From Chrysemys picta bellii (Eukaryota): a stretch of 64,000 nucleotides of DNA. The notes under the pieces were generated by a model. The model saw nothing but the letters and a program-made list of their open reading frames with translations, searched no databases and was not told the origin of the DNA. Of this stretch, positions 11,951 through 52,360 are shown piece after piece; position 1 is the first letter of the stretch; the number at the start of each line of letters is the position of its first letter. The stretch is from the NCBI RefSeq assembly GCF_011386835.1, contig NC_088803.1, positions 5,642,001 through 5,706,000 of the forward strand. The letters are read 5' to 3'. The translations under genes were made by a program, and so were the position numbers.

Positions 11951-12327
11951 GCCATCTCCTCTGCTGTGTCCCATCACGAGCCCCTTGGGGCTGCTACACA
12001 ACTCAACGCGCACAGAATGGCAACACGGCAACAACTCCTTTGGGCCCCAGCCAGAGAGAACAAGTGATTCAAATACCCCACGCTGCCCAGAGGGGGAAGT
12101 CCCATAAAACCAGGGAGAGAACCCAGGAGTCCTGGCTCCTAGCCCACCCGCTGTAACCCGCCCCCCTCCCGCGCTGTGGGTTCTATGCTGGGGGGGGGGA
12201 AAGGGGGAGCGAGGGAACGAAGAAGCAGGTGACGGAGGAAGAAGGATTGTAAAATCGATGGGCTGAGCCAGCCAGGGCACGGAGCTGTCACCCACATGGA
12301 TATATGAGCTTCCTTGATACACTCCGA

Positions 12328-15300
12328 CTTCCACCCCTCCGCTGGCCCGGCTCCTTCCTTCCCTCCATCCCCGTCTGCTTCCCTCCATCCCTCCACTGGC
12401 CTGGCTCCTTCCTTCCCTCCATCCCCGTCTGCTTCCCTCCACCCCTCCGCTGGCCCGGCTCCTTCCTTCCCTCCATCCCTCCGCTGGCCCGGCTCCTTCC
12501 TTCCCTCCATCCCCGTCTGCTTCCCTCCATCCCTCCGCTGGCCCGGCTCCTTCCTTCCCTCCATCCCCGTCTGCTTCCCTCCATCCCTCCGCTGGCCCGG
12601 CTCCTTCCTTCCCTCCATCCCCATCTGCTTCCCTCCATCCCTCCGCTGGCCCGGCTCCTTCCTTCCCTCCATCCCCGTCTGCTTCCCTCCATCCCTCTGC
12701 TGGCCTGGCTCCTTCCTTCCCTCCATCCCCGTCTGCTTCCCTCCATCCCTCCGTCGTCCTGGCTCCTTCCTTCCCTCAATCCCTGTCTGCTTCCCTCCAT
12801 CCCTCTGTCGTCCCGGCTCCTTCCTTCCCTCCATCCCTGTCTGCTTCCCTCTATCCCTCCACCGGCCTGGCTCCTTCCTTCCCTCCATCCCTCCGCCGGC
12901 CCGGCTCCTTCCTTCCCTCAATCCCTGTCTGCTTACCTCCATCCCTCCGTCGTCCCGGCTCCTTCCTTCCCTCAATCCCTGTCTGCTTCCCTCCATCCCT
13001 CCGCCGGCCCGGTTCCCTCCTTCCCTCCATCCCTCCACCGGCCCGGCTCCTTCCTTCCCTCCATCCCTGTCTGCTTCCCTCCATCCCTCCGCTGGCCCGG
13101 CTCCTTCCTTCCCTCCATCCCTGTCTGCTTCCCTCCATCCCTCCGCTGGCCCAGCTCCTTCCTTCCCTCCATCCCTGTCTGCTTCCCTCCATCCCTCCAC
13201 CGGCCCGGTTCCCTCCTTCCCTCCATCCCTCCGCTGGCCCGGCTCCTTCCTTCCCTCCATCCCCATCTGCTTCCCTCCATCCCTCCGCTGGCCCGGCTCC
13301 TTCCTTCCCTCCATCCCTGTCTGCTTCCCTCCATCCCTCCGCTGGCCCGGCTCCTTCCTTCCCTCCATCCCTGTCTGCTTCCCTCCATCCCTCCACCGGC
13401 CCGGTTCCCTCCTTCCCTCCATCCCTCCGCTGGCCCGGCTCCTTCCTTCCCTCCATCCCTCCGCTGGCCCGGCTCCTTCCTTCCCTCCATCCCCGTCTGC
13501 TTCCCTCCATCCCTCCGCTGGCCTGGCTCCTTCCTTCCCTCCATCCCCGTCTGCTTCCCTCCATCCCTCCGTTGTCCCGGCTCCTTCCTTCCCTCAATCC
13601 CTGTCTGCTTCCCTCCATCCCTCTGTCGTCCCGGCTCCTTCCTTCCCTCCATCCCTGTCTGCTTCCCTCTATCCCTCCACCGGCCTGGCTCCTTCCTTCC
13701 CTCCATCCCTCCGCCGGCCCGGCTCCTTCCTTCTCTCCATCCCTGTCTGCTTCCCTCCATCCCTCCACTGGCCCGGCTCCTTCCTTCCCTCCATCCCCGT
13801 CTGCTTCCCTCCATCCCTCCGCTGGCCCGGCTCCTTCCTTCCCTCCATCCCCGTCTGCTTCCCTCCATCCCTCCGCTGGCCCGGCTCCTTCCTTCCCTCC
13901 ATCCCTGTCTGCTTCCCTCCATCCCTCCGCCGGCCCGGCTCCTTCCTTCCCTCCATCCCTGTCTGCTTCCCTCCATCCCTCCGCCGGCCCGGCTCCTTCC
14001 TTCCCTCCATCCCTGTCTGCTTCCCTCCATCCCTCCGCCGGCCCGGCTCCTTCCTTCCCTCCATCCCTGTCTGCTTCCCTCTATCCCTCCGCTGGCCCGG
14101 CTCCTTCTTTCCCTCCATCCCTCCACCGGCCCGGCTCCTTCCTTCCCTCCATCCCTCCGTCGTCCCGGCTCCTTCCTTCTCTCCATCCCTGTTTGCTTCC
14201 CTCCATCCCTCCACCAGCCCGGCTCCTTCCTTCCCTCCATCCCTGTCTGCTTCCTTCCACCTCCCCACATTGCTACCCACCCCCATCCCCCACCTCTGGC
14301 AGGAGTGGGTGTCTGGAGCCAAACAAGGGGGCCCTGCTGGGGGAGGACCCAATACCGGGACCCCCAGCAGAACACACACCCCTTGTCTGGGCCTGGCCCT
14401 CACCCCCCCACACACACTCCTTCTCCCATCCCTCCTTCCACCCATCCCTCCACGCTCCATCCGCCTCTCCCTCCCTCCATCCTCCCATCCCTCCTTTCAT
14501 CCATCCTCCCACCACCCACCCCTCCATCTCCACACCCCTCCTCCCATCCCTCCATCTCCACATCCCCTCCATCCCTCCTTCCATCCACCCATCCTTCCAT
14601 CCTCCCATTCACCATCCCTCCTTCCATCCATCCCTCCATCTCCACATGTCATCCATCCATCCTTACATCCCTCCATCCACCCATCCTTCCATCCTCCCAT
14701 TCCCCATCCCTCCTCCATCTCCACATCCCATCCTCCCACCCCCCATCCCTCCATCTCCACATCCCCTCCATCCCTCCATCCCCTCCATCCATCCTCCCAC
14801 CCCCATCCCTCCATCTCCACATCCCCTCCATCCATCCTTCCATCCATCCCTCTATCTCCACATCCCCTCCATCCCTCCTTCCATCCACCCATCCTTCCAT
14901 CCATCCCTCCATCTCCACATCCCCTCCATCCATCCTCCCACCCCCATCCCTCCATCTCCACATCCCCTCCATCCCTACTTCCATCCACCCCTTCATCCAT
15001 CCTCCCCCCCATCCCTCCATCTCCACACCCCTCCTCCCATCCCTCCATCCCCCATCCTTCCATCTCCACATCCCCTCCATCCATCCTCACATCCCCATCC
15101 CTTCATCCACCCCTCCACCCCTCCTTCCATCCACCCCATCCCTCCCCATATCCCCTCCTTCCATCCACCCCCATCCCTCCTCCCATCTCCTCCAGCTCTC
15201 CATGCCCCGTCCACCCCCCTCCATCCCTCCTCCCATCCCACCTTCCATCCATCCTCCCATCCCCCATCACTACACCCCCTCCATCCTCCTCTCCATCCAT

Positions 15301-20146: not shown

Positions 20147-21225
20147 ATGCCGTCGGGCAGCATCGAGGTGGAGTCGAAGTTCGAGGCCGGGCCAGACACG
20201 GAGGCCAGGCTGGCGGCGCTGGGGGCAGCCCCGGCTGGGAGCTCGTCCTTCCGTGACCTTTACTACGACACCCCCGACCTGCGCCTCACGCGGGCTGACC
20301 ACTGGCTGCGGCTCCGCCAGGGGGCCGGCTGGGAGCTCAAGTGCCCCCCGGTGCCACGCGGAGGAGCCGAAGGGTCCAGCCATGACCTGGGTGCCGCGTC
20401 CCCGGAGCCACCAGAGGGCACCGGAGGGTCCAGCCTTGTCCCGGCTGCCCTGTCCCCGGAGCCGCCAGCAGGGGGCGCCAGAGACTCCAGCCATGTCCCA
20501 GATGCCCTGTCCCCGGAGCCTCCCGCCATGGCCACCACCTACCAGGAGCTGACGAGCCCCCGCGCCATCGTGGGCCGGTTATGCGGGGTGCTGGGCGTGG
20601 CCCCCGTGCCTGGCTGGGACCAGGTGCCTGGGGCCGTGGCTGGGCTGGGCCTGCAGGAGTTTGCCAGCTTCGTGACCCAGCGCCGCAGCTACCGGCTGGG
20701 GGGCCTGCGGGTGGACCTGGACCAGGCAGATTTCGGCTATGCTGTGGCCGAGGTGGAAGCCCTGGTGGGGGCCCAGGAGGACGTGCCGGCGGCGCTGGAG
20801 GAGGTGCTGCAGCTCCGGCGGGCACTGGGTGAGCAGCGCTGGGGGCACCAGAGCAGGGGCTGGGGGACAGGGACGCCCCCACTGACCAGGGTTTCTCTCC
20901 CCTCCTAGGGCGGGACGGTGCCACCCGTGTGCCGGGCAAGATGAGCGTCTACCTCCAGCGGCATCGCCCCCGGCACTACCAGGAGCTACTCCTGGCGGGG
21001 GTGCTGGCCGGGGACCCGCAGCTGCCCCCCCATGGCGACAACACTTCCGAGCCTGAGATGCTGGCCACACGGGGCCCCTCCAAAGTCATGGAACTGGCGG
21101 GGGGGCCGGAGGGTGAAAAAGGGCCCCCTAGTGCCGGGGGGGGATTGGGCACGGACCGGCCCCCTAGTGCCGGGGGGAGATTGGGCATGGACCAGCCCCC
21201 CCCTCCGCAGCACAGTGCCCCCTAG
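20147..21225 (+). CDS. THTPA: Thiamine triphosphatase (CYTH family), copy 1; exons 20147-20828 and 20909-21225, 332 aa
   Basis: MPSGSIEVESKF (ExExK), YYDTP, DHWLRLR, WELKC, TYQEL, FASFVTQR, LRVDLDQADFGYAVAEVEAL, then an 80-bp GT-AG intron and PGKMSVYLQRHRPRHYQELL. All match human THTPA motifs as recalled. Confidence 0.95.
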
Positions 21226-21730
21226 CGCTGGGGGGGGGATTGGGCATGGACCGGCCCCCTCCTCCCAGCTGCAGCCCATCTAAGGATCCCCCGGTCACAG
21301 AACAGGGCTCTAACACCAGAGCGCCATGGGGCCGGCCCACGGCCGAGCGGCTCCCTGCTCCGTTGGCCTCGGTGGCTCACTGCAGCGTGACCCCCAGTCA
21401 CACGCCAGCACGCGCCCGGCTTGGCCCCAGGCCCGAGGGCGGAAAGAGAGGAAAGCTGCAGCTGTGGGACCCGCCCCCGTTTGATCCCCTGGGGGAGAGC
21501 ATGGGACAGCTGCCCCCCCCCCCCAAATTCAACCCAGTTACGCTAGGATGAGGCAGCCAGACCGAGGGGGGGAGGGAAGTTCAGACATGGCAAAGAGCTG
21601 GGGGCTAGGGGAGGTGTTAAGGGTTATGCTGGGCTCCGGTTGCCGAGCAATGGGATAGGACGGGGACCCAGCGTCCGTCAGCTCCCTTGGGGGTACCCTT
21701 GGCCTAAGTTGCGCAGGCAATGCTGCAGTG

Positions 21731-22050
21731 CAGCGCCCCCTCGTGGCCGAGGGACGGGCCCCAGCAGCACAGCGCCCCCCTAGTGACCGGCCCCGGGGAC
21801 GGGTCCCAGGGCACAGCGTCCCCCTAGTGACCGGCCCGGGGACGGGTCCCAGGGCACAGCGCCCCCCTAGTGACCGGCCCGGGGACGGGCCCCAGTACCC
21901 CGTAGGGACAGACTAGGTGACAGGGCACAGCCCCCCCAGTGACCGGCCAGGCGACGGGCCCCAGGGCGCAGCGCCCCCTAGTGGACACTTGGACCAAGAG
22001 ACGGGCCCCAGGGCGCAGCACCCCCTAGTGGACACTTGGACCAAGAGACA
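21731..22050 (-). repeat. Minisatellite of CTCF-like motifs, copy 1 (~7 units)
   Basis: Units carry CAGCGCCCCCT(A/C)GTGG (reverse complement CCAC(T/G)AGGGGGCGCTG) or CAGCGCCCCCCTAGTGAC. Confidence 0.75.
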
Positions 22051-25160: not shown

Positions 25161-25660
25161 NNNNNNNNNNNNNNNNNNNNNNNNNNNNNNNNNNNNNNNN
25201 NNNNNNNNNNNNNNNNNNNNNNNNNNNNNNNNNNNNNNNNNNNNNNNNNNNNNNNNNNNNNNNNNNNNNNNNNNNNNNNNNNNNNNNNNNNNNNNNNNNN
25301 NNNNNNNNNNNNNNNNNNNNNNNNNNNNNNNNNNNNNNNNNNNNNNNNNNNNNNNNNNNNNNNNNNNNNNNNNNNNNNNNNNNNNNNNNNNNNNNNNNNN
25401 NNNNNNNNNNNNNNNNNNNNNNNNNNNNNNNNNNNNNNNNNNNNNNNNNNNNNNNNNNNNNNNNNNNNNNNNNNNNNNNNNNNNNNNNNNNNNNNNNNNN
25501 NNNNNNNNNNNNNNNNNNNNNNNNNNNNNNNNNNNNNNNNNNNNNNNNNNNNNNNNNNNNNNNNNNNNNNNNNNNNNNNNNNNNNNNNNNNNNNNNNNNN
25601 NNNNNNNNNNNNNNNNNNNNNNNNNNNNNNNNNNNNNNNNNNNNNNNNNNNNNNNNNNNN
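25161..25660. other. Assembly gap (500 N)
   Basis: Run of N separating the two copies of the duplicated block. Confidence 0.99.
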
Positions 25661-40600: not shown

Positions 40601-41217
40601 TGTGGGACAGGGAGTGGGACTGGATGGGAGGTGCCGTGGGGCAGGGAGCTGGCCTAGGGTGCTGTGGGGCAGGGAGTGGGGCTGGGTGGGGGGGGTGCTG
40701 TGGGTCAAGGAGCTGGGCTGGGGTGCTGTGGGACAGGGAGTGGGACTGGATGGGAGGTGCCGTGGGGCAGGGAGCTGTGGGACAGGGAGTGGGACTGGAT
40801 GGGAGGTGCCCTGGGGCAGGGAGCTGGGCTGGGGTACCGTGGCGGGTATCGTGGGGCAGGGAGCTGGCCTAGGGTGCTGTGGGGCAGGGAGTGGGGCTGG
40901 GTGCAGGGGGTGCTGTGGGACAGGGAGTGGGACTGGATGGGAGGTGCCGTGGGGCAGGGAGCTGGGCTGGGGTACCGTGGCGGGTATCGTGGGGCAGGGA
41001 GCTGGCCTAGGGTGCTGTGGGGCAGGGAGTGGAGCTGGATGGGAGGTGCCGTGGGGCAGGGAGCTGGGCTGGGGTGCTCTGGGGAAAAAGCAGGGAAGGA
41101 GCAGGGGGCCGGGACCAGGGGGTCGCTCTGGGGAAAAAGCAGGGAAGGAGCGGGGGGCCGGGACCAGGGGGTCGCTCCGTGGCTCACTCCCCCTCTCCTG
41201 TCCCCAGAGGGGCCGCA

Positions 41218-42239
41218 ATGCCGTCGGGCAGCATCGAGGTGGAGTCGAAGTTCGAGGCCGGGCCAGACACGGAGGCCAGGCTGGCGGCGCTGGGGGCAGC
41301 CCCGGCCGGGAGCTCGTCCTTCCGTGACCTTTACTACGACACCCCCGACCTGCGCCTCACGCGGGCTGACCACTGGCTGCGGCTCCGCCAGGGGGCCGGC
41401 TGGGAGCTCAAGTGCCCCCCGGTGCCACGCGGAGGAGCCGAAGGGTCCAGCCATGACCTGGGTGCCGCGTCCCCGGAGCCGCCAGAGGGCACCGGAGGGT
41501 CCAGCCTTGTCCCGGCTGCCCTGTCCCCGGAGCCGCCAGCAGGGGGCGCCAGAGACTCCAGCCATGTCCCAGATGCCCTGTCCCCGGAGCCTCCCGCCAT
41601 GGCCACCACCTACCAGGAGCTGACGAGCCCCCGCGCCATCGTGGGCCGGTTATGCGGGGTGCTGGGCGTGGCCCCCGTGCCTGGCTGGGCCCAGGTGCCT
41701 GGGGCCGTGGCTGGGCTGGGCCTGCAGGAGTTTGCCAGCTTCGTGACCCAGCGCCGCAGCTACCGGCTGGGGGGCCTGCGGGTGGACCTGGACCAGGCAG
41801 ATTTCGGCTACGCTGTGGCTGAGGTGGAAGCCCTGGTGGGGGCCCAGGAGGACGTGCCGGCGGCGCTGGAGGAGGTGCTGCAGCTCCGGCGGGCACTGGG
41901 TGAGCAGCGCTGGGGGCACCAGAGTAGGGGCTGGGGGACAGGGACGCCCCCACTGACCAGGGTTTCTCTCCCCTCCTAGGGCGGGACGGTGCCACCCGTG
42001 TGCCGGGCAAGATGAGCGTCTACCTCCAGCGGCATCGCCCCCGGCACTACCAGGAGCTACTCCTGGCGGGGGTGCTGGCCGGGGACCCGCAGCTGCCCCC
42101 CCATGGCAACAACACTTCTGAGCCTGAGATGCTGGCCACACGGGGCCCCTCCAAAGTCATGGAACTGGCGGGGGGGCCGGAGGGTGAAACGGGGCCCCCT
42201 AGTGCCGGGGGGGGGATTGGGCACGGACCGGCCCCCTAG
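41218..42239 (+). CDS. THTPA: Thiamine triphosphatase, copy 2; exons 41218-41899 and 41980-42239, 313 aa
   Basis: Near-identical to copy 1 (GWDQ>GWAQ, GDN>GNN, EKG>ETG). A 9-G versus 8-G run shifts the last residues and the stop. Confidence 0.93.
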
Positions 42240-42783
42240 TGCCGGGGGGAGATTGGGCATGGACCAGCCCCCCCCTCCGCAGCACAGCGCCCCCTAGCGC
42301 CGGGAGCGATTGGGCACGGACCGGCCCCCTCCTCCCAGCTGCAGCCCATCTAAGGATCCCCCGGTCACAGAACAGGGCTCTAACACCAGAGCGCCATGGG
42401 GCCGGCCCACGGCCGAGCGGCTCCCTGCTCCCTTGGCCTTGGTGGCTCACTGCAGCGTGACCCCCAGTCACACGCCAGCACGCGCCCGGCTTGGCCCCAG
42501 GCCCGAGGGCGGAAACAGAGGAAAGCTGCAGCTGTGGCACCCGCCCCCGTTTGATCCCCTGGGGGAGAGCATGGACAGCTGCCCCCCCCCCCCCCCAATT
42601 CAACCCAGTTAGGCTAGGATGAGGCAGCCAGACCGAGGGGGGGGAGGGAAGTTCAGACATGGCAAAGAGCTGGGGGCTAGGGGAGGTGTTAAGGGTTATG
42701 CTGGGCTCCGGTTGCCGAGCAATGGGGTCCGTCAGCTCCCTTGGGGGGACCCTTGGCCTAAGTTGCGCAGGCAATGCTGCAGC

Positions 42784-43560
42784 GCAGCGCCCCCTCGTGG
42801 CCGAGGGACGGGCCCCAGCAGCACAGCGCCCCCCTAGTGACCGGCCGAGGGACGGGCCCCAGCAGCACAGCGCCCCCCTAGTGACTGGCCCGGGGACGGG
42901 CCCCAGGGCACAGCGCCCCCCTAGTGACTGGCCCGGAGACGAGCCCCAGGGCACAGCGCCCGCCTAGTGACCGGCCCGGGGACGGGTCCCAGGGCACAGC
43001 CCCCCCCAGTGACCGGCCAGGCGACGGGCCCCAGGGCGCAGCGCCCCCTAGTGGACACGTGGACCAAGAGACGGGCCCCAGGGCGCAGCGCCCCCTAGTG
43101 GACACTTGGACCAAGAGACGGGCCCCAGGGCGCAGCGCCCCCCTAGTGACCGGCCCGGGGACGGGCCCCAGGGCACAGCGCCCCCCTAGTGACCGGCCCG
43201 GAGACGGGCCCCAGGGCACAGCGCCCCCCTAGTGACCGGCCCGGAGACGGGCCCCAGGGCACAGCGCCCGCCTAGTGACCGGCCCGGGGACGGGCCCCAG
43301 GGCACAGCGCCCCCCTAGTGACCGGCCCGGAGACGGGCCCCAGGGCACAGCGCCCGCCTAGTGACCGGCCCGGGGACGGGTCCCAGGGCACAGCCCCCCC
43401 AGTGACCGGCCAGGCGACGGGCCCCAGGGCGCAGCGCCCCCTAGTGGACACTTGGACCAAGAGACGGGCCCCAGGGCGCAGCGCCCCCTAGTGGACACTT
43501 GGACCAAGAGACGGGCCCCAGGGCGCAGCGCCCCCTAGTGGACACTTGGACCAAGAGACA
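42784..43560 (-). repeat. Minisatellite of CTCF-like motifs, copy 2 (~18 units)
   Basis: Five exact GCAGCGCCCCCTAGTGGAC units plus one CAGCGCCCCCTCGTGGCC, and about 12 weaker variants, all co-oriented. Confidence 0.78.
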
Positions 43561-43678
43561 TGTTCAGGGGCTTGATTTTATTGTCTAAACATTCTGTCCA
43601 CATGTGAGAGTTGCTGGGGGGTGATGTGGGGGTGGGGTCATCGCTCCATGGGGGGGGCGGGGGGCGAGCGTCGCTCCA

Positions 43679-46600
43679 CTATTGCCTCCGGAAACCTACA
43701 AAAGAAAGCGAATAAGGGAGTGCGGAAGGAGAGCAAGCAGACGAGTGACAGATCCCAGCCCCCACTCTCCTCCTAGAGCCAGGAGAGAACCCCGGCGTCC
43801 TGGCTTCCTGCCCCCCCAGCTCTAACCCATTACAGCCCACTCGCCTTCCAGGGCCAGGCCCCTGGTGACCGGACTCCCAGCTGGTTCTAGCAGCTCCGCG
43901 GGCTGCTGTTCACCTGTGGAACCCCCCGCCACTGGCTTTGGAGGGGCTGCCCTTCCACTCACCCTTCTTCCTTCCCCTCTTCGCACTCATCTTCCTCCTC
44001 CTCTTCCGCTGGGGGCTCAGAGCCTGGCAGGGGAACGGAGATAATTAGCTGAGGGAGGTTCAGCCCCAGCTTCCTCCCCTCCCCCCCCATTCCACGCTAC
44101 CTCACCTCTCCAGTGGGGGGCGCTGCCCCGGTCAGGGCGCTGATATCACCGAAGTGGGTCAGGGAGTGGAGCTGGGCCCCCAGCGCGGCCGCCCGGCGCC
44201 GCCGGGCCTTGTCCTGCCGGCTCACGTTCAGCCTCACCAGCATGGCCTCCTCGTAGCGCCTCCTGCAACGACCGGAACGGGGAGCCTGGGTCCCGCTCGA
44301 ACCGTCAGTCCCACTCCCCTCTGCCCCCCAAGCCAGGAGAGAACCCAGGAGTCCTGGCTCCTAGCCCCTCCCCCGCTCTAACCACTAGCCCCCACTCCCC
44401 TCCAGAGCCAGGACAGAACCCAGGAGTCCTGGCTCCCAGCCCCCCACTCCCCTCCCCGAGCCAGGACAGAACCCAGGAGTCCTGGCTCCCAGCCCCCCAG
44501 TGCTCTAACCACTAGCCCACACTCACCTGTGCTCATCCTCCTGGCTCTGCCTGGTCGCGTGCAGGTAGCGCCCTTCGCGGATTTCCTCCGGTGCCTCCGA
44601 GAACTGTTCTTTCAGCTCCCGGATGACGGAGCTGCTCAGCGCTCGCTTCTTCGCCTGCTCCAGGACCTTCTTCTCCCGCTCAGCCACCGTCTCATCTGAG
44701 GAGGGGCAGAAGGGGGGACGGATGGCGATGCAGCCACCTCTGGGGTGGGGCGCGGGGGCTGCGTACAGGGGAACCCCTCACCCAGCGCTGAGATGCGGCC
44801 ACCTCTGGGGTGGGGCGCGGAGGCGGAGTATAGGGGGACCCCTCACCCAGCGCTGAGATGCGGCCACCTCTGGGGTGGGGCGCGGAGGCGGAGTATAGGG
44901 GAACCCCTCACCCGGTGCTGAGATGCGGCCACCTCTGGGTGGGGCGCGGGGCTGGGTGCGGAGGCTGGTTATACAAATCCCGCTCTCTTTCTGGCTAGAG
45001 CCCAGGTGGCCAGGCTCCCAGCACGTACCATAATGCACCGGGACCAGCCGGGGTGGGACGTATTTCCGGACCCCTCCTTTGGCCAGGGGCTTCTTCCCAG
45101 CAGCTTTGCCTTCAGTCCCGTCCGCCTCCTCCTCGTCACTCAGCTGCCCAAGAGAAAACAGCCTGTCAATCAAGGGCTGGTCCCGCCCTCCCCCACGGCA
45201 GGCCAATCCCAGGGGAACCCCATTCCTCCTTCCAGAGTCAAGACAGAGCCCAGGAGTCCTGGCTCCCGGGCCCTCCCCCGCCCCGCTCTAACTACCAGCC
45301 CCCACTCCCCTCCTAGAGCCAGGGACAGAACCCAGGAGTCCTGCCTGCCCCTCCCCCTCACCTTGCTCATCATGTTCCCAGGGTCTGGTTTGAATCTCAG
45401 CGGATTGTCATCTCCTGCAACGAGAGCGCCCCCGGGGGGGTGTGGTCAGCAGAGGGCCCAGTCACCCCGCACCCCACCCCCCTCGGTGCCCCCAACTCAC
45501 CCACGGCGCCCGTCACAGCCACCTTCACCAGCTTGTCAACCTGGTACCGGAGTTTCTGCTCAATGGGGCGCATCTTCTCCAACACCTGGGGGGGAGGAAG
45601 AATGTGGTGGTGGGGTCAGACGTGGGGAGATCCTGCCCCCTAAGAACCACCCACCGCACCCAGGAGTTCAGGCTCCCAGTACCCCCTCTGCTCTAACCAC
45701 TAGTCCCCCTCCCCTCCCAGAGCCAGGGATAGAACCCTGGAGTCCTGGCTCACAGCCCCTCCCCCCGCTCTAACCACTGGACCCCACTCCCCTCCTGGAG
45801 ATACCCTCCAGAGCCAGAACCTGCCCTCCAGCAGTCCCCCCGCCCCCCCAAGACCTCTCCCTCTGGGCCCCCCATAGGCTCCATCGCCCACCCACCGTGC
45901 GCAGCTCGGCCAGGCGCAGGACAGCCGGCTGGGCAGCCAGGGACCGGCCTGAGGTCTTCTCCAGCACCAGCTGGGCCAGGTCCTGGAGATAGAACAGCAG
46001 CAGCTGGGCCTTCAGCTCCAGGAAACTCAGCCCCTGCAGAAGGGGGAGAGGCATCACGGGGGGGGGCAGAATGGGGGGATGGGGACACCCGGGAGAGGGA
46101 TGGGGGCACAGGGGCAGGATTGGGGGGGGGGTGGGGACACCCGGGAGAGGGATGGGGGCACAGGGGCAGGATTGGGGAGGCACCCGGGAGAGGGACAGGG
46201 CAGGATGGGGGGGGGACACCTGGGAGAAGGACAGGGCGACAGGGGCAAGATGGGGGGGGCACACCCAGGGTAGGGGAGAGCAGGGGTGGGGGCAGGATGG
46301 GGGAACACCTGGGGGGGGTCTGGCATCAGAGTCGGGGGCGGATCACCATGAGTGGGGGAGAAGAGAACGCAGCAGGTCGTCCCCCCGCGCTCTCACCTTC
46401 TCTGTGGGGAAGGCGCCGGCTCGGACCCTCTGCAGCAGCCCCTGGACATGGGCCGTGACCCCGACAACCTGGGGGGGGGGGCAGAAAGGGGGTGAGTAGG
46501 GACCTTTCCCCTGGGGGGCGGCAACGATCCAGGATCTGGGGGGTCGGGGTCTCTCTCACCTGCTCCTGGAGTGATCCCAGCAGGGCCAGCGCGGGGGGCA

Positions 46601-48276: not shown

Positions 48277-49129
48277 TGTCACGGACTCACAGATCGTGCC
48301 CACTCTTGGCCCTGTGTGGTCCATGGGGGGTGCCCCTTCCAGGGCGACAGCCCTTCTCGGGGTCCACTCTCTCCCGGGGTCAGGCCCCTCCACCTCCTGG
48401 AGCCGCACCTCTCTGAGCCTTAGCACGTCTGTCTCCGCCATGGGCCCCCTCAGGGAGTCCCCTCGCTCTGGACCCCCGGGGCCTCCATCACCAAAGGGGA
48501 CGATGCCCCCCCCCACCCCTGCCCTGTTCTCTAGACCTGAGCGACTCTCAGCCAGCGTCACACAGGAGGGTTTATTGAGTGTTGAACCCAGCACAGGAAA
48601 CTCTCCGGCCTCAGGCCTGGCCTCCCTCAGCCCGGCACATCCCAGTCTCCCTGCATCCAGGTGGGCTCTGCCTGCTCCCCCTCTCCAGCCCAGAGCCCCC
48701 CTGCTTCCCAGCTGGGCATCTGATACCCCCGGCCCCAAGCCCGGCCTCTGTCCATTGTCTTCTCTCCGGGGAAACAGGGTCTCCTGGGCCTCCTCTCCCC
48801 TCTTCTGTCCTCTGGCCCCCTCTGGCTGGAACTGGCTGGTCAGGTCGCTGGGTCCTCTCTCCGCAGCCCTTTGTCCTCCCACTATCCAGACCCGGCTGCG
48901 ACTCCTGAGCTGGGTCTCCGGGTTGTCAGGTCACCAATCGCTGGGGTGTCCATCCCCCAGGCCATCAGATGGGGTCCCAAGTTCCCTCTCTGGTCCTCTG
49001 TAACCACAAACTCCCTTTCCCCTCACCTCGTTAAACCAGTAACACCCAGGGACACTGAGTCCCACCCTCTCTGCATGCAAACCATTGGAAAAACAAGGAA
49101 AAAACAAGACAATTCCCCCACTTCGTCAC
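48277..49129 (-). mobile_element. Solo LTR (copy A)
   Basis: Begins TGTCAC, ends GTCAC(C), C-run flanks on both sides, TTTATT (minus-strand AATAAA) near 48571. No coding capacity. Confidence 0.6.
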
Positions 49130-49264
49130 CCCCCCAACCACTAGCCCCCCCCCAGAAAACCCAGGAGTCCTGGCTCCCATCCCCCCCAACCACTAACCCC
49201 CCCCCCAGAATGCAGGAGTCCTGGCTCCCAGCCCCCCCACTCTAACCACTAGCCCCCCCCCTGA

Positions 49265-49764
49265 NNNNNNNNNNNNNNNNNNNNNNNNNNNNNNNNNNNN
49301 NNNNNNNNNNNNNNNNNNNNNNNNNNNNNNNNNNNNNNNNNNNNNNNNNNNNNNNNNNNNNNNNNNNNNNNNNNNNNNNNNNNNNNNNNNNNNNNNNNNN
49401 NNNNNNNNNNNNNNNNNNNNNNNNNNNNNNNNNNNNNNNNNNNNNNNNNNNNNNNNNNNNNNNNNNNNNNNNNNNNNNNNNNNNNNNNNNNNNNNNNNNN
49501 NNNNNNNNNNNNNNNNNNNNNNNNNNNNNNNNNNNNNNNNNNNNNNNNNNNNNNNNNNNNNNNNNNNNNNNNNNNNNNNNNNNNNNNNNNNNNNNNNNNN
49601 NNNNNNNNNNNNNNNNNNNNNNNNNNNNNNNNNNNNNNNNNNNNNNNNNNNNNNNNNNNNNNNNNNNNNNNNNNNNNNNNNNNNNNNNNNNNNNNNNNNN
49701 NNNNNNNNNNNNNNNNNNNNNNNNNNNNNNNNNNNNNNNNNNNNNNNNNNNNNNNNNNNNNNNN
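49265..49764. other. Assembly gap (500 N)
   Basis: Run of N flanked by overlapping array+LTR sequence. Confidence 0.99.
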
Positions 49765-50611: not shown

Positions 50612-51406
50612 TGTCAGGGACTCACAGATCGTGCCCACTCACGCCTTCCAGGGCGACAGCCCTTCTCGGGGTCCACTCTCTCCCGGGGTCAGGCCCCTCC
50701 ACCTCCTGGATCCGCACCTCTCTGAGCCTTAGCACGTCTGTCTCCGCCATGGGCCCCCTCAGGGAGTCCCCTCGCTCTGGACCCCCGGAGCCTCCACCCC
50801 CGAAGGGGACGATGCAACCCTGTTCTCTAGACCGGAGCGACTCTCAGCCAGAGTCACACAGGAGGGTTTACTGAAACTCTCCGGGCCTCAGGCCTGGCCT
50901 CCCCAGCCCGGCACATCCCAGTCTCCCTGCATCCAGGCGGGCTCTGCCTGCTCCCCCTCTCCAGCCCAGAGCCCCCCTGCTTCCCAGCTGGGCATCTGAT
51001 ACCCCCGGCCCCAAGCCCGGCCTCTGTCCATTGTCTTCTCTCCAGGGAAACAGGGTCTCGTGGGCCTCCTCTCCCCTCTTCTGTCCTCTGGCCCCCTCTG
51101 GCTGGACCCGGCTGGTCAGGTCACTGGGGTCCTCTCTCCGCAGCCCTTTGTCCTCCCACTGGCCAGACCCAGCTGCGACTCCTGAGCTGGGTCTCCGGGT
51201 TGTCAGGTCACCAATCGCTGGGGTGTCCATCCTCCAGGCCATCAGATGGGGTCCCAAGTTCCCTCTCTGGTCCTCTGTAACCACAAACTCCCTCTCCCCT
51301 CCCCTCGTTAAACCAGTAACACCCAGGGAAACTGAGTCCCACCCCCTCTGCATGCAAACCATTGGAAAAACAAGGAAAAAACAAGACAATTCCCCCACTT
51401 CGTCAC
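50612..51406 (-). mobile_element. Solo LTR (copy B, same flanks as copy A)
   Basis: Colinear with 48277-49129 but with three deletions and numerous substitutions. Confidence 0.6.
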
Positions 51407-52360
51407 CCCCCCAACCTCTACCCCCCCCCCAGAAAACCCAGGAGTCCTGGCTCCCATCCCCCCCAACCACTAACCCCCCCCCACAGAATGCAGGAGTCCT
51501 GGCTCCCAGCCCCCCCACTCCAACCACTAGCCCCCCCCTGAGATCCCAGGAGTCCTGGCTCCCAGCCCCCCCACTCTAACCACTAGCCCCCCCCCCTGAG
51601 ATCCCAGGAGTCCTGGCTCCCCCCCCCCACCACTAGCCCCACAAAGTCTGCCCCTGTGACAAAGCAGGACTGTTCTTAATGTTTCCTCTGAATACTGTGT
51701 GGGTGCCTCAGTTTCCCCTATGCAGTTCTTAAGTCTCTAGGTGGTGGGATAAGGGGGTGTAATTGTTGCAGAGCAAAGGGCCAGTGTGCATAAATGGCCG
51801 ACACTCTGTCTCCTGGCAACTGATGGTCTGGGCCCTTCCCCCCTGCAAGGTGATAGCTAAAGGTGTTGTAGAACAAAGGAATCAGGTGACCTTCTGGCCC
51901 GGGAAAGGGACAAAGTCCAGAGGAGGAGGGACTGGAGGGTGAGTCACTTTGGGCTGGCTGGGGGTGTGGAGTGAGTGCAGACATGGGTGTCTGGTTCCCT
52001 GCCCCCCAAAATGGACCCAGCTGAGGGGTCCTGTTTCCTGTACCTACAAGCTCTGTTCTACGCTGTGGTCCTGTCGTCTAATAAACCTCTGTGTCACGCT
52101 GGCTGAGGGTCACGTCTGACTGCGGAGTCGGGGGGCAGGGCCCTCTGGCCCCCCCCAGGACCCCGCCCGGGCGGACTCACTGCGGGAAGCGCACGGTGGG
52201 GCAGGGGATGCTGGATGCTCCGGGGTCAGACCCAGGGAGGTGGAAGCCGTGTGAGCTTTTTGCCCTGGAGACCGTCGGCACAGAGAGGAGGCTCCCCCCG
52301 AGTACTGCCTGGCTTCGTAGGGAGCAGTTCCAGAGCATCGCCCGGGGACTCCGTGACAAC

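Follow-up and report, generated by a model that had tools for sequence, protein, structure and literature searches.

The mammalian X macrosatellites DXZ4, ICCE and FIRRE are composed of tandem units with co-oriented CTCF motifs. The orientation of these motifs matters for long-range contacts, and the sequence of the units turns over fast while the CTCF motif is kept (PMC3491370, PMC6125249, 10.1101/165340). Two human repeats show a dependence on copy number. In the VNTR of HRNR exon 3, the count of predicted CTCF sites scales with allele length and has been proposed to alter local folding (PMC10234305), and a copy-number-variable tRNA VNTR at 1q23.3 has been proposed to serve as a boundary (PMC4041453). 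A connection with transcript 3' ends comes from another system, in which a CTCF/cohesin roadblock is proposed to favour the upstream poly(A) site (Nanavaty et al. 2020, as summarised in PMC12162027).

The repeat considered here is a minisatellite of Chrysemys picta bellii, located between the convergent genes THTPA and NGDN (Table 1). It lies within a stretch of 64,000 nt that was analysed as a whole (hereafter the window, to which all positions refer). Our preferred reading is that an ancient CTCF-binding site has expanded into a minisatellite in a lineage-specific manner; the site would act as a polar barrier or roadblock, and its copy number would be nearly neutral. We assign this reading a probability of about 60%.

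For gene identity, Pfam detects a CYTH domain in the plus-strand ORF 41017-41979 (THTPA) and a Sas10/Utp3 domain in the minus-strand ORF 45770-46264 (NGDN), and exons were searched separately by reference. Two annotated C. picta bellii thiamine-triphosphatases match the two copies of the gene in the window at 100%. RNA contigs support the splicing of both genes: 41898 is joined to 41979 in THTPA, and in NGDN 44526-44681 is joined to 44105-44261 and then to the last exon, over which the RNA contig reaches down to about 43650. No RNA contig from this run covers 42197-43564, a weak indication of absence. Contigs cannot show 3' ends or read-through. The NGDN introns contain SINE-like elements (44249-44590, 45275-45445 and 45617-45787) whose k-mer depth in the contigs is 1e4-1e5 in every sample, and many chimeric contig joints trace to them.

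Table 1. Features of the THTPA-NGDN interval and of its second assembled version (window coordinates)
Feature	Positions	Strand	Details
Short array version (copy 1)	21729..22050	-	F A A A a B B, 7 units; sites 21731 (21.7 bits), 21969 (23.3 bits), 22016 (19.9 bits)
Assembly gap	25161..25660		500 N
THTPA coding region	41218..42239	+	exon 1 41218-41898, exon 2 41979-42236 plus stop
Two CTCF motifs in THTPA exon 1 coding repeat	41476..41551	+	16.6 and 22.9 bits
THTPA-proximal sister minisatellite remnant	42190..42339	-	36/57-bp units; weak CTCF-like motifs 42190 (12.2), 42285 (14.2)
Ancestral THTPA poly(A) signal position	42580..42595	+	from alignment, ~42585-42590; ~190 bp upstream of array
Minisatellite between THTPA (+) and NGDN (-), long version (copy 2)	42783..43560	-	18 units head-to-tail
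CTCF motif, first unit F	42785..42803	-	core CCACGAGGGGGCGC; 21.7 bits
CTCF motif, B unit	43039..43057	-	23.3 bits
CTCF motif, B unit	43086..43104	-	23.3 bits
CTCF motif, B unit	43432..43450	-	23.3 bits
CTCF motif, B unit	43479..43497	-	23.3 bits
CTCF motif, terminal B unit	43526..43544	-	23.3 bits; orthologue of the single site kept in all turtles compared
NGDN 3'-end region	43545..43582	-	AATAAA 43582-43577; predicted CA cleavage 43562-43561; GU-rich downstream element
NGDN last exon	43561..43695	-	acceptor before 43695; last codons ..FRRQ; TAG 43681-43679; 3'UTR ~118 nt

The array and its CTCF motifs

Parsed one by one, the 18 units of the long array measure 37-47 bp, within the 10-100 bp range of minisatellites; TRF reports a 43-bp period with about 17 copies. 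The units follow each other as F A A A g a B B A A A g A g a B B B. F, the first unit (39 bp), carries a CTCF motif. Twelve units are of the A type (A, g or a; 41-44 bp), with a degenerate motif, and five are of the B type (47 bp, the last one truncated at 37 bp), with a consensus motif. Two higher-order blocks can be recognized within the string, identical to each other at 218 of 222 positions.

Consensus-grade CTCF motifs were found in six of the 18 units, all on the minus strand and with scores of 21.7-23.3 bits, by a scan with a matrix after JASPAR MA0139.1 (maximum 26 bits). The initial annotation, which had described an array of co-oriented CTCF consensus motifs between convergent genes, with about 18 units and six consensus-grade sites in the long version and about seven units and three sites in the short one, is borne out in these respects. 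Its further statement that the units are built on the CTCF consensus holds for the six F and B units and fails for the twelve A-type units, which score at most 8.3 bits and are not CTCF-grade. In these units TCAC replaces CCAC and the G-run has one extra G. This 1-bp insertion displaces the motif's 3' half from its register, leaving 12 of the 18 units without a motif.

An independent cross-check made use of the IUPAC CTCF consensus given in the initial annotation (CCASYAGRKGGCRS), together with 100 shuffles. The window contains 11 matches to this consensus against 0.23 expected, none of the 100 shuffles reaches 11, and five of the six sites of the long array match it exactly. Under the array's own composition (77% GC), the probability of a score of at least 21.7 bits is 3.5e-7 per position; for a 23-bit match it is about 1e-8. 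Scores so far above chance under the array composition, together with the shuffle control, indicate that the motif is no composition artefact. Co-orientation follows automatically from tandem arrangement and is no evidence by itself.

The position of the array relative to the NGDN 3' end is also close to what had been reported at first. Sixteen nucleotides separate the NGDN AATAAA from the array edge (about 15 bp in the initial annotation), and the CA at which cleavage is predicted falls at this edge, as had been proposed. Between 41900 and 44300, neither strand has a canonical hexamer other than this AATAAA. There is no second minus-strand AATAAA between the array and THTPA, nor, in Chrysemys, any canonical plus-strand hexamer between the THTPA stop codon and NGDN. 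At the ancestral position of the THTPA poly(A) signal, Emys, Pangshura and Platysternon have AATAAA and Caretta has AATACA; neither Chrysemys version retains the signal. Read along the NGDN-sense strand, the B unit opens with the GU-rich downstream element of NGDN, and the CTCF core comes next. The terminal B motif begins 32 nt past the AATAAA (35 nt for its core), about 20 nt beyond the predicted CA. A CTCF motif is thus located downstream of the poly(A) signal in the transcribed path of NGDN, the cleavage site itself being predicted.

A strong motif match does not necessarily imply binding. The array might be a neutral, GC-rich minisatellite that is methylated, packed into nucleosomes and devoid of CTCF, in a stretch that is probably recombination-prone. 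Indeed, the window is saturated with minisatellites (268 TRF rows), most units are degenerate and copy number is highly labile. The CpG observed/expected ratio in the array is 0.60, and variants in which the CpG at motif position C12 has become TpG or CpA occur in several Emys units as well as in copy 1, which suggests some germline methylation. However, the dominant inhibitor of CTCF binding is methylation of C2 on the motif strand (PMC10325916). In the B-unit core, C2 is followed by A and C12 alone lies in a CpG, so that methylation alone would not exclude binding. The low probability of a 23-bit match given above is also difficult to reconcile with an unbound repeat, as is the conservation of the single-copy orthologous site of Emydura and Caretta, which by far exceeds that of its flanks. 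We regard the absence of CTCF binding as unlikely.

Other candidate explanations were examined. No canonical G-quadruplex occurs at the array on either strand and the GC skew is only 0.07; a G-quadruplex or R-loop terminator was dropped on these grounds. An origin from a high-copy dispersed family or a transposable element is unlikely, the k-mer depth being 4-35 over the array against 1e4-1e5 over the neighbouring SINEs. A scan of the whole window at Rfam gathering thresholds gave no matches.

The two assembled versions

Some 20 kb of the window are directly duplicated (4942-25158 and 25661-46501), and the edges of the duplication coincide with both sides of the 500-N gap. The duplicated block comprises upstream repeats, THTPA and two thirds of NGDN, counted from its 3' end. 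The 20.5-kb contig lies almost wholly within the homologous start of the next contig. In unique sequence, copy 1 and copy 2 differ by 1.2-1.3% substitutions, while every repeat differs in length. Since the duplication is bounded by contig ends at the N gap, overlapping contig ends are indicated rather than a biological duplication. We consider it very probable that the duplication is false and that overlapping contig ends, probably representing two haplotypes, have been set in tandem. A real tandem segmental duplication is unlikely, both because its boundaries are contig ends and because Caretta (40 kb upstream seen) and Emys each have a single THTPA and a single NGDN. The copy 1 and copy 2 of the initial annotation are probably not two loci; this is almost certainly one locus assembled twice.

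If the duplication is false, the 7-unit and 18-unit arrays represent two alleles, the longer having one more higher-order block than the shorter. The difference of 7 against 18 units, and of 3 against 6 sites, is then probably allelic. NCBI lists a new 'thiamine-triphosphatase-like' protein alongside the long-standing accession; this extra gene, contained in the 20-kb THTPA/partial-NGDN block, is probably an artefact.

Three further samples yield contigs that are a mosaic of copy-1 and copy-2 states, with mostly one state per sample, a pattern made ambiguous by bubble popping during contig building. These short-read contigs break at the array edges, so that the array cannot be sized from them. 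Three linked differences in an NGDN exon (44099, 44130 and 44151) behave unlike the other ~40, in that both states are present in all three DNA samples, which bear three organism labels. They could represent a polymorphism that is old and shared, or a related third sequence located elsewhere. A second assembly gap (49265-49764) is flanked by stretches that are 93% identical (48335-49264 and 50644-51541) in a repeat-rich region, and may be another assembly problem.

The locus in other turtles

Loci were fetched by means of THTPA orthologues from Mauremys, Caretta, Emydura (a pleurodire), Pangshura, Platysternon and Emys, making seven turtles with Chrysemys; Dermochelys and Natator lay outside the comparison. 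THTPA converges on NGDN in all seven. In the alligator no NGDN is found within 10 kb of THTPA, and in the lizard Podarcis THTPA converges on AP1G2 instead. This difference in synteny places a rearrangement breakpoint of the turtle lineage at the THTPA/NGDN junction. The gene order in turtles is AP1G2 -> <- ZFHX2, THTPA -> <- NGDN. Podarcis has a minus-strand CTCF motif of its own (20.3 bits) close to the AP1G2 3' end.

In the other six turtles, the motif that adjoins the NGDN AATAAA scores 19.8-24.7 bits and is always on the NGDN-sense (minus) strand. Conservation was expressed as mean pairwise identity in the seven-turtle alignment (in parentheses, pleurodire versus cryptodires). The AATAAA hexamer is invariant. 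The 14-mer CTCF core has an identity of 0.94 (0.90), as compared with 0.75 (0.47) for the spacer/downstream element, 0.56 (0.37) for the 40 nt that follow the motif and 0.52 (0.32) for the NGDN 3'UTR. Among the segments compared, the hexamer alone equals the core in conservation. As judged from these alignments, the predicted poly(A)-proximal CTCF site is a conservation island that has stayed at a fixed distance from AATAAA during about 200 My of turtle evolution. It is plausible that this island reflects a function of the site, although, because turtles evolve slowly, conservation over 14 bp is only suggestive and does not amount to proof. The zinc-finger domain of CTCF and its motif are conserved across amniotes.

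Conservation next to a poly(A) signal could also be that of an NGDN 3'-end processing or pause element, with the block serving as a G-rich auxiliary sequence (hnRNP H/F) or a MAZ-type G-run pause rather than as a CTCF site. The G5 run is found 25-35 nt beyond the predicted NGDN cleavage site, in a zone in which auxiliary G-rich elements are known to act, and the block directly adjoins the AATAAA and the downstream element. However, CCACTAG, the core's non-G portion, is no less invariant than the G-run, and the 14-mer as a whole agrees with the CTCF consensus. Sister arrays bear the core far from any poly(A) site, and the lack of a canonical G-quadruplex and the low skew are again unfavourable. 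A processing or pause element of this kind seems very unlikely.

Turning to copy number, a second motif, of the A type, is common to cryptodires and lies 30-45 nt beyond the first. Emys, confamilial with Chrysemys, possesses some ten A-type units in which the five-G motif is intact (16.5-19.9 bits), and one B unit; eight of its ~12 units reach at least 17 bits. The presence of an intact A-type array in Emys indicates that the A-type expansion is older than the Emys/Chrysemys split, and its five-G A units and single B unit that the 1-bp insertion and the multiplication of B are specific to the Chrysemys lineage. Minus-strand motifs of at least 13 bits between THTPA and NGDN number 1 in Emydura, 3 in Caretta, 4 and 7 in the short and long versions of Chrysemys, 10 in Pangshura, 12 in Emys, 15 in Platysternon and 47 in Mauremys (41 of at least 17 bits in the latter). 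Plus-strand motifs in the same interval number 0-1 in every species. The comparison of repeat number across species, which had been suggested at the outset, thus reveals clear variation.

These counts bear on the proposal that the array is a copy-number-tunable insulator or roadblock, in which each added motif unit would strengthen the boundary or termination and selection would act on unit number. Clustered co-oriented CTCF sites are known to strengthen boundaries, and the two assembled versions do differ by one higher-order block, with 3 against 6 strong sites. It must be noted, however, that 12 of the 18 Chrysemys units are motif-less and have nevertheless not been purged. Moreover, turtles of equal gene arrangement have anywhere from 1 to 47 sites, the poly(A)-proximal one being the only constant. 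Finally, the 47-bp spacing of B units is about that of one CTCF footprint, which would make joint occupancy uncertain. Motif loss in two thirds of the Chrysemys units and the approximately fifty-fold variation around a constant site fit drift around a conserved anchor. On sequence grounds the evidence leans against tuning by copy number, which appears improbable.

The same motif core recurs in a sister minisatellite that begins at the THTPA stop codon. It exists in about 2 copies in Chrysemys, 8 in Pangshura, 14 in Platysternon and 41 in Mauremys. In Mauremys mutica (10906-13071 of the retrieved locus) it consists of a 53-bp unit repeated 41 times with 96% matches, each unit with a minus-strand motif of 17-18 bits; here THTPA and NGDN are 7 kb apart, as compared with 0.8-1.8 kb in the other turtles. 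The THTPA stop codon and C-terminal tail are located inside the 36/57-bp repeat (in copy 1, 21119-21269). The THTPA proteins of the two assembled versions have 313 and 332 aa, with different tails, and 37 bp of the stop-codon repeat (42214-42250) are missing from a contig of another sample.

A third repeat is found within the coding sequence. At 41440-41610 (20367-20520 in copy 1), THTPA exon 1 has an in-frame repeat of 57 bp (19 aa), each unit of which has a consensus-grade plus-strand CTCF motif. It is also present in other retrieved loci (L003:10205-10508 and L008:10253-10385), with 6 copies in Emydura, 3 in Emys, 2 in Caretta, 2 in Chrysemys and 1 in Platysternon. The plus-strand motifs of exon 1 face the minus-strand array in a '-> <-' layout, at a distance of 1.3-2 kb. 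This is not the divergent layout typical of domain boundaries and counts against the barrier reading.

Altogether, the motif is carried by two sister arrays and a coding repeat, all within the same 2 kb. It could be speculated that turtle genomes repeatedly convert single conserved CTCF sites into co-oriented minisatellites, with a unit (43-55 bp) of about one footprint, but we find this generalization doubtful. If true, it would imply a CTCF-dependent duplication mechanism, e.g. fork stalling or breakage at the occupied site, and heritable allele-specific differences in boundary or terminator strength.

Proposed origin and relation to known systems

An outline of how the locus may have evolved can be drawn from the comparison. 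The ancestral state would have been an AATAAA, a GU-rich downstream element and then a single strong minus-strand CTCF core. Cryptodires would have gained the second, A-type motif, and emydids would have amplified the A-type unit. In the Chrysemys lineage, the 1-bp insertion in the G-run would then have spread through the A-type units, destroying their motif, and the B unit, which combines the downstream element and the motif, would have multiplied to 2-5 copies. Unequal exchange would go on changing copy number, with effects that are most likely nearly neutral and redundant.

As for function, CTCF blocks cohesin with its N-terminal side, which lies at the 3' end of the motif. Given this polarity and the location of the motif on the NGDN-sense strand, the site would stop loop extrusion arriving from the THTPA/ZFHX2 side. 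CTCF bound to the B-type sites might thus form a polar cohesin barrier, the blocking side of which would be turned toward THTPA/ZFHX2. A roadblock role is possible as well, because the site is directly behind the only NGDN poly(A) signal: bound CTCF would slow RNA polymerase II, and NGDN transcripts would be cleaved before running antisense into THTPA. It appears most likely, as far as can be judged from motifs and alignments, that we are dealing with a conserved CTCF barrier or terminator site caught in neutral minisatellite turnover and not with a tuned device. A regulatory site could persist within such turnover, yet be partly erased by it. If CTCF does bind, otherwise syntenic turtles would offer a natural allelic and phylogenetic series, composed of the anchor plus 0 to ~46 extra co-oriented sites, in which the effects of site number and spacing on insulation and termination could be seen without engineering.

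Like DXZ4, ICCE and FIRRE, the turtle array consists of CTCF motifs that are tandem and co-oriented. The units of these macrosatellites, however, are kilobases long (43-47 bp in the turtle) and are bound specifically on the inactive X (Xi), whereas the turtle array spans less than 1 kb, is situated at the poly(A) site of a gene and has predicted binding sites. It also differs from a DXZ4-like repeat, in which all or most units bear the motif, in that only 6 of the 18 Chrysemys units have a usable motif. With the human HRNR and 1q23.3 VNTRs, it shares a number of predicted CTCF sites that varies with repeat copy number. The HRNR repeat is coding and the 1q23.3 unit measures 7.3 kb; in contrast, the turtle array occupies intergenic DNA between two poly(A) sites and goes back to a site that is conserved among turtles.

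The system of Nanavaty et al. (2020), to the extent that it is described in the summary cited above, resembles the turtle locus in that Pol II would meet a CTCF site after it has passed a poly(A) site. According to that summary, the site there lies between one gene's alternative poly(A) sites, and DNA methylation acts as its switch. The turtle motif follows the only NGDN poly(A) site, lies between convergent genes and has its C2 outside CpG. Tandem arrays of CTCF motifs are thus already known from DXZ4, ICCE, FIRRE, 1q23.3 and HRNR, and what the turtle locus adds to them is a series of 1 to 47 sites around a conserved anchor.
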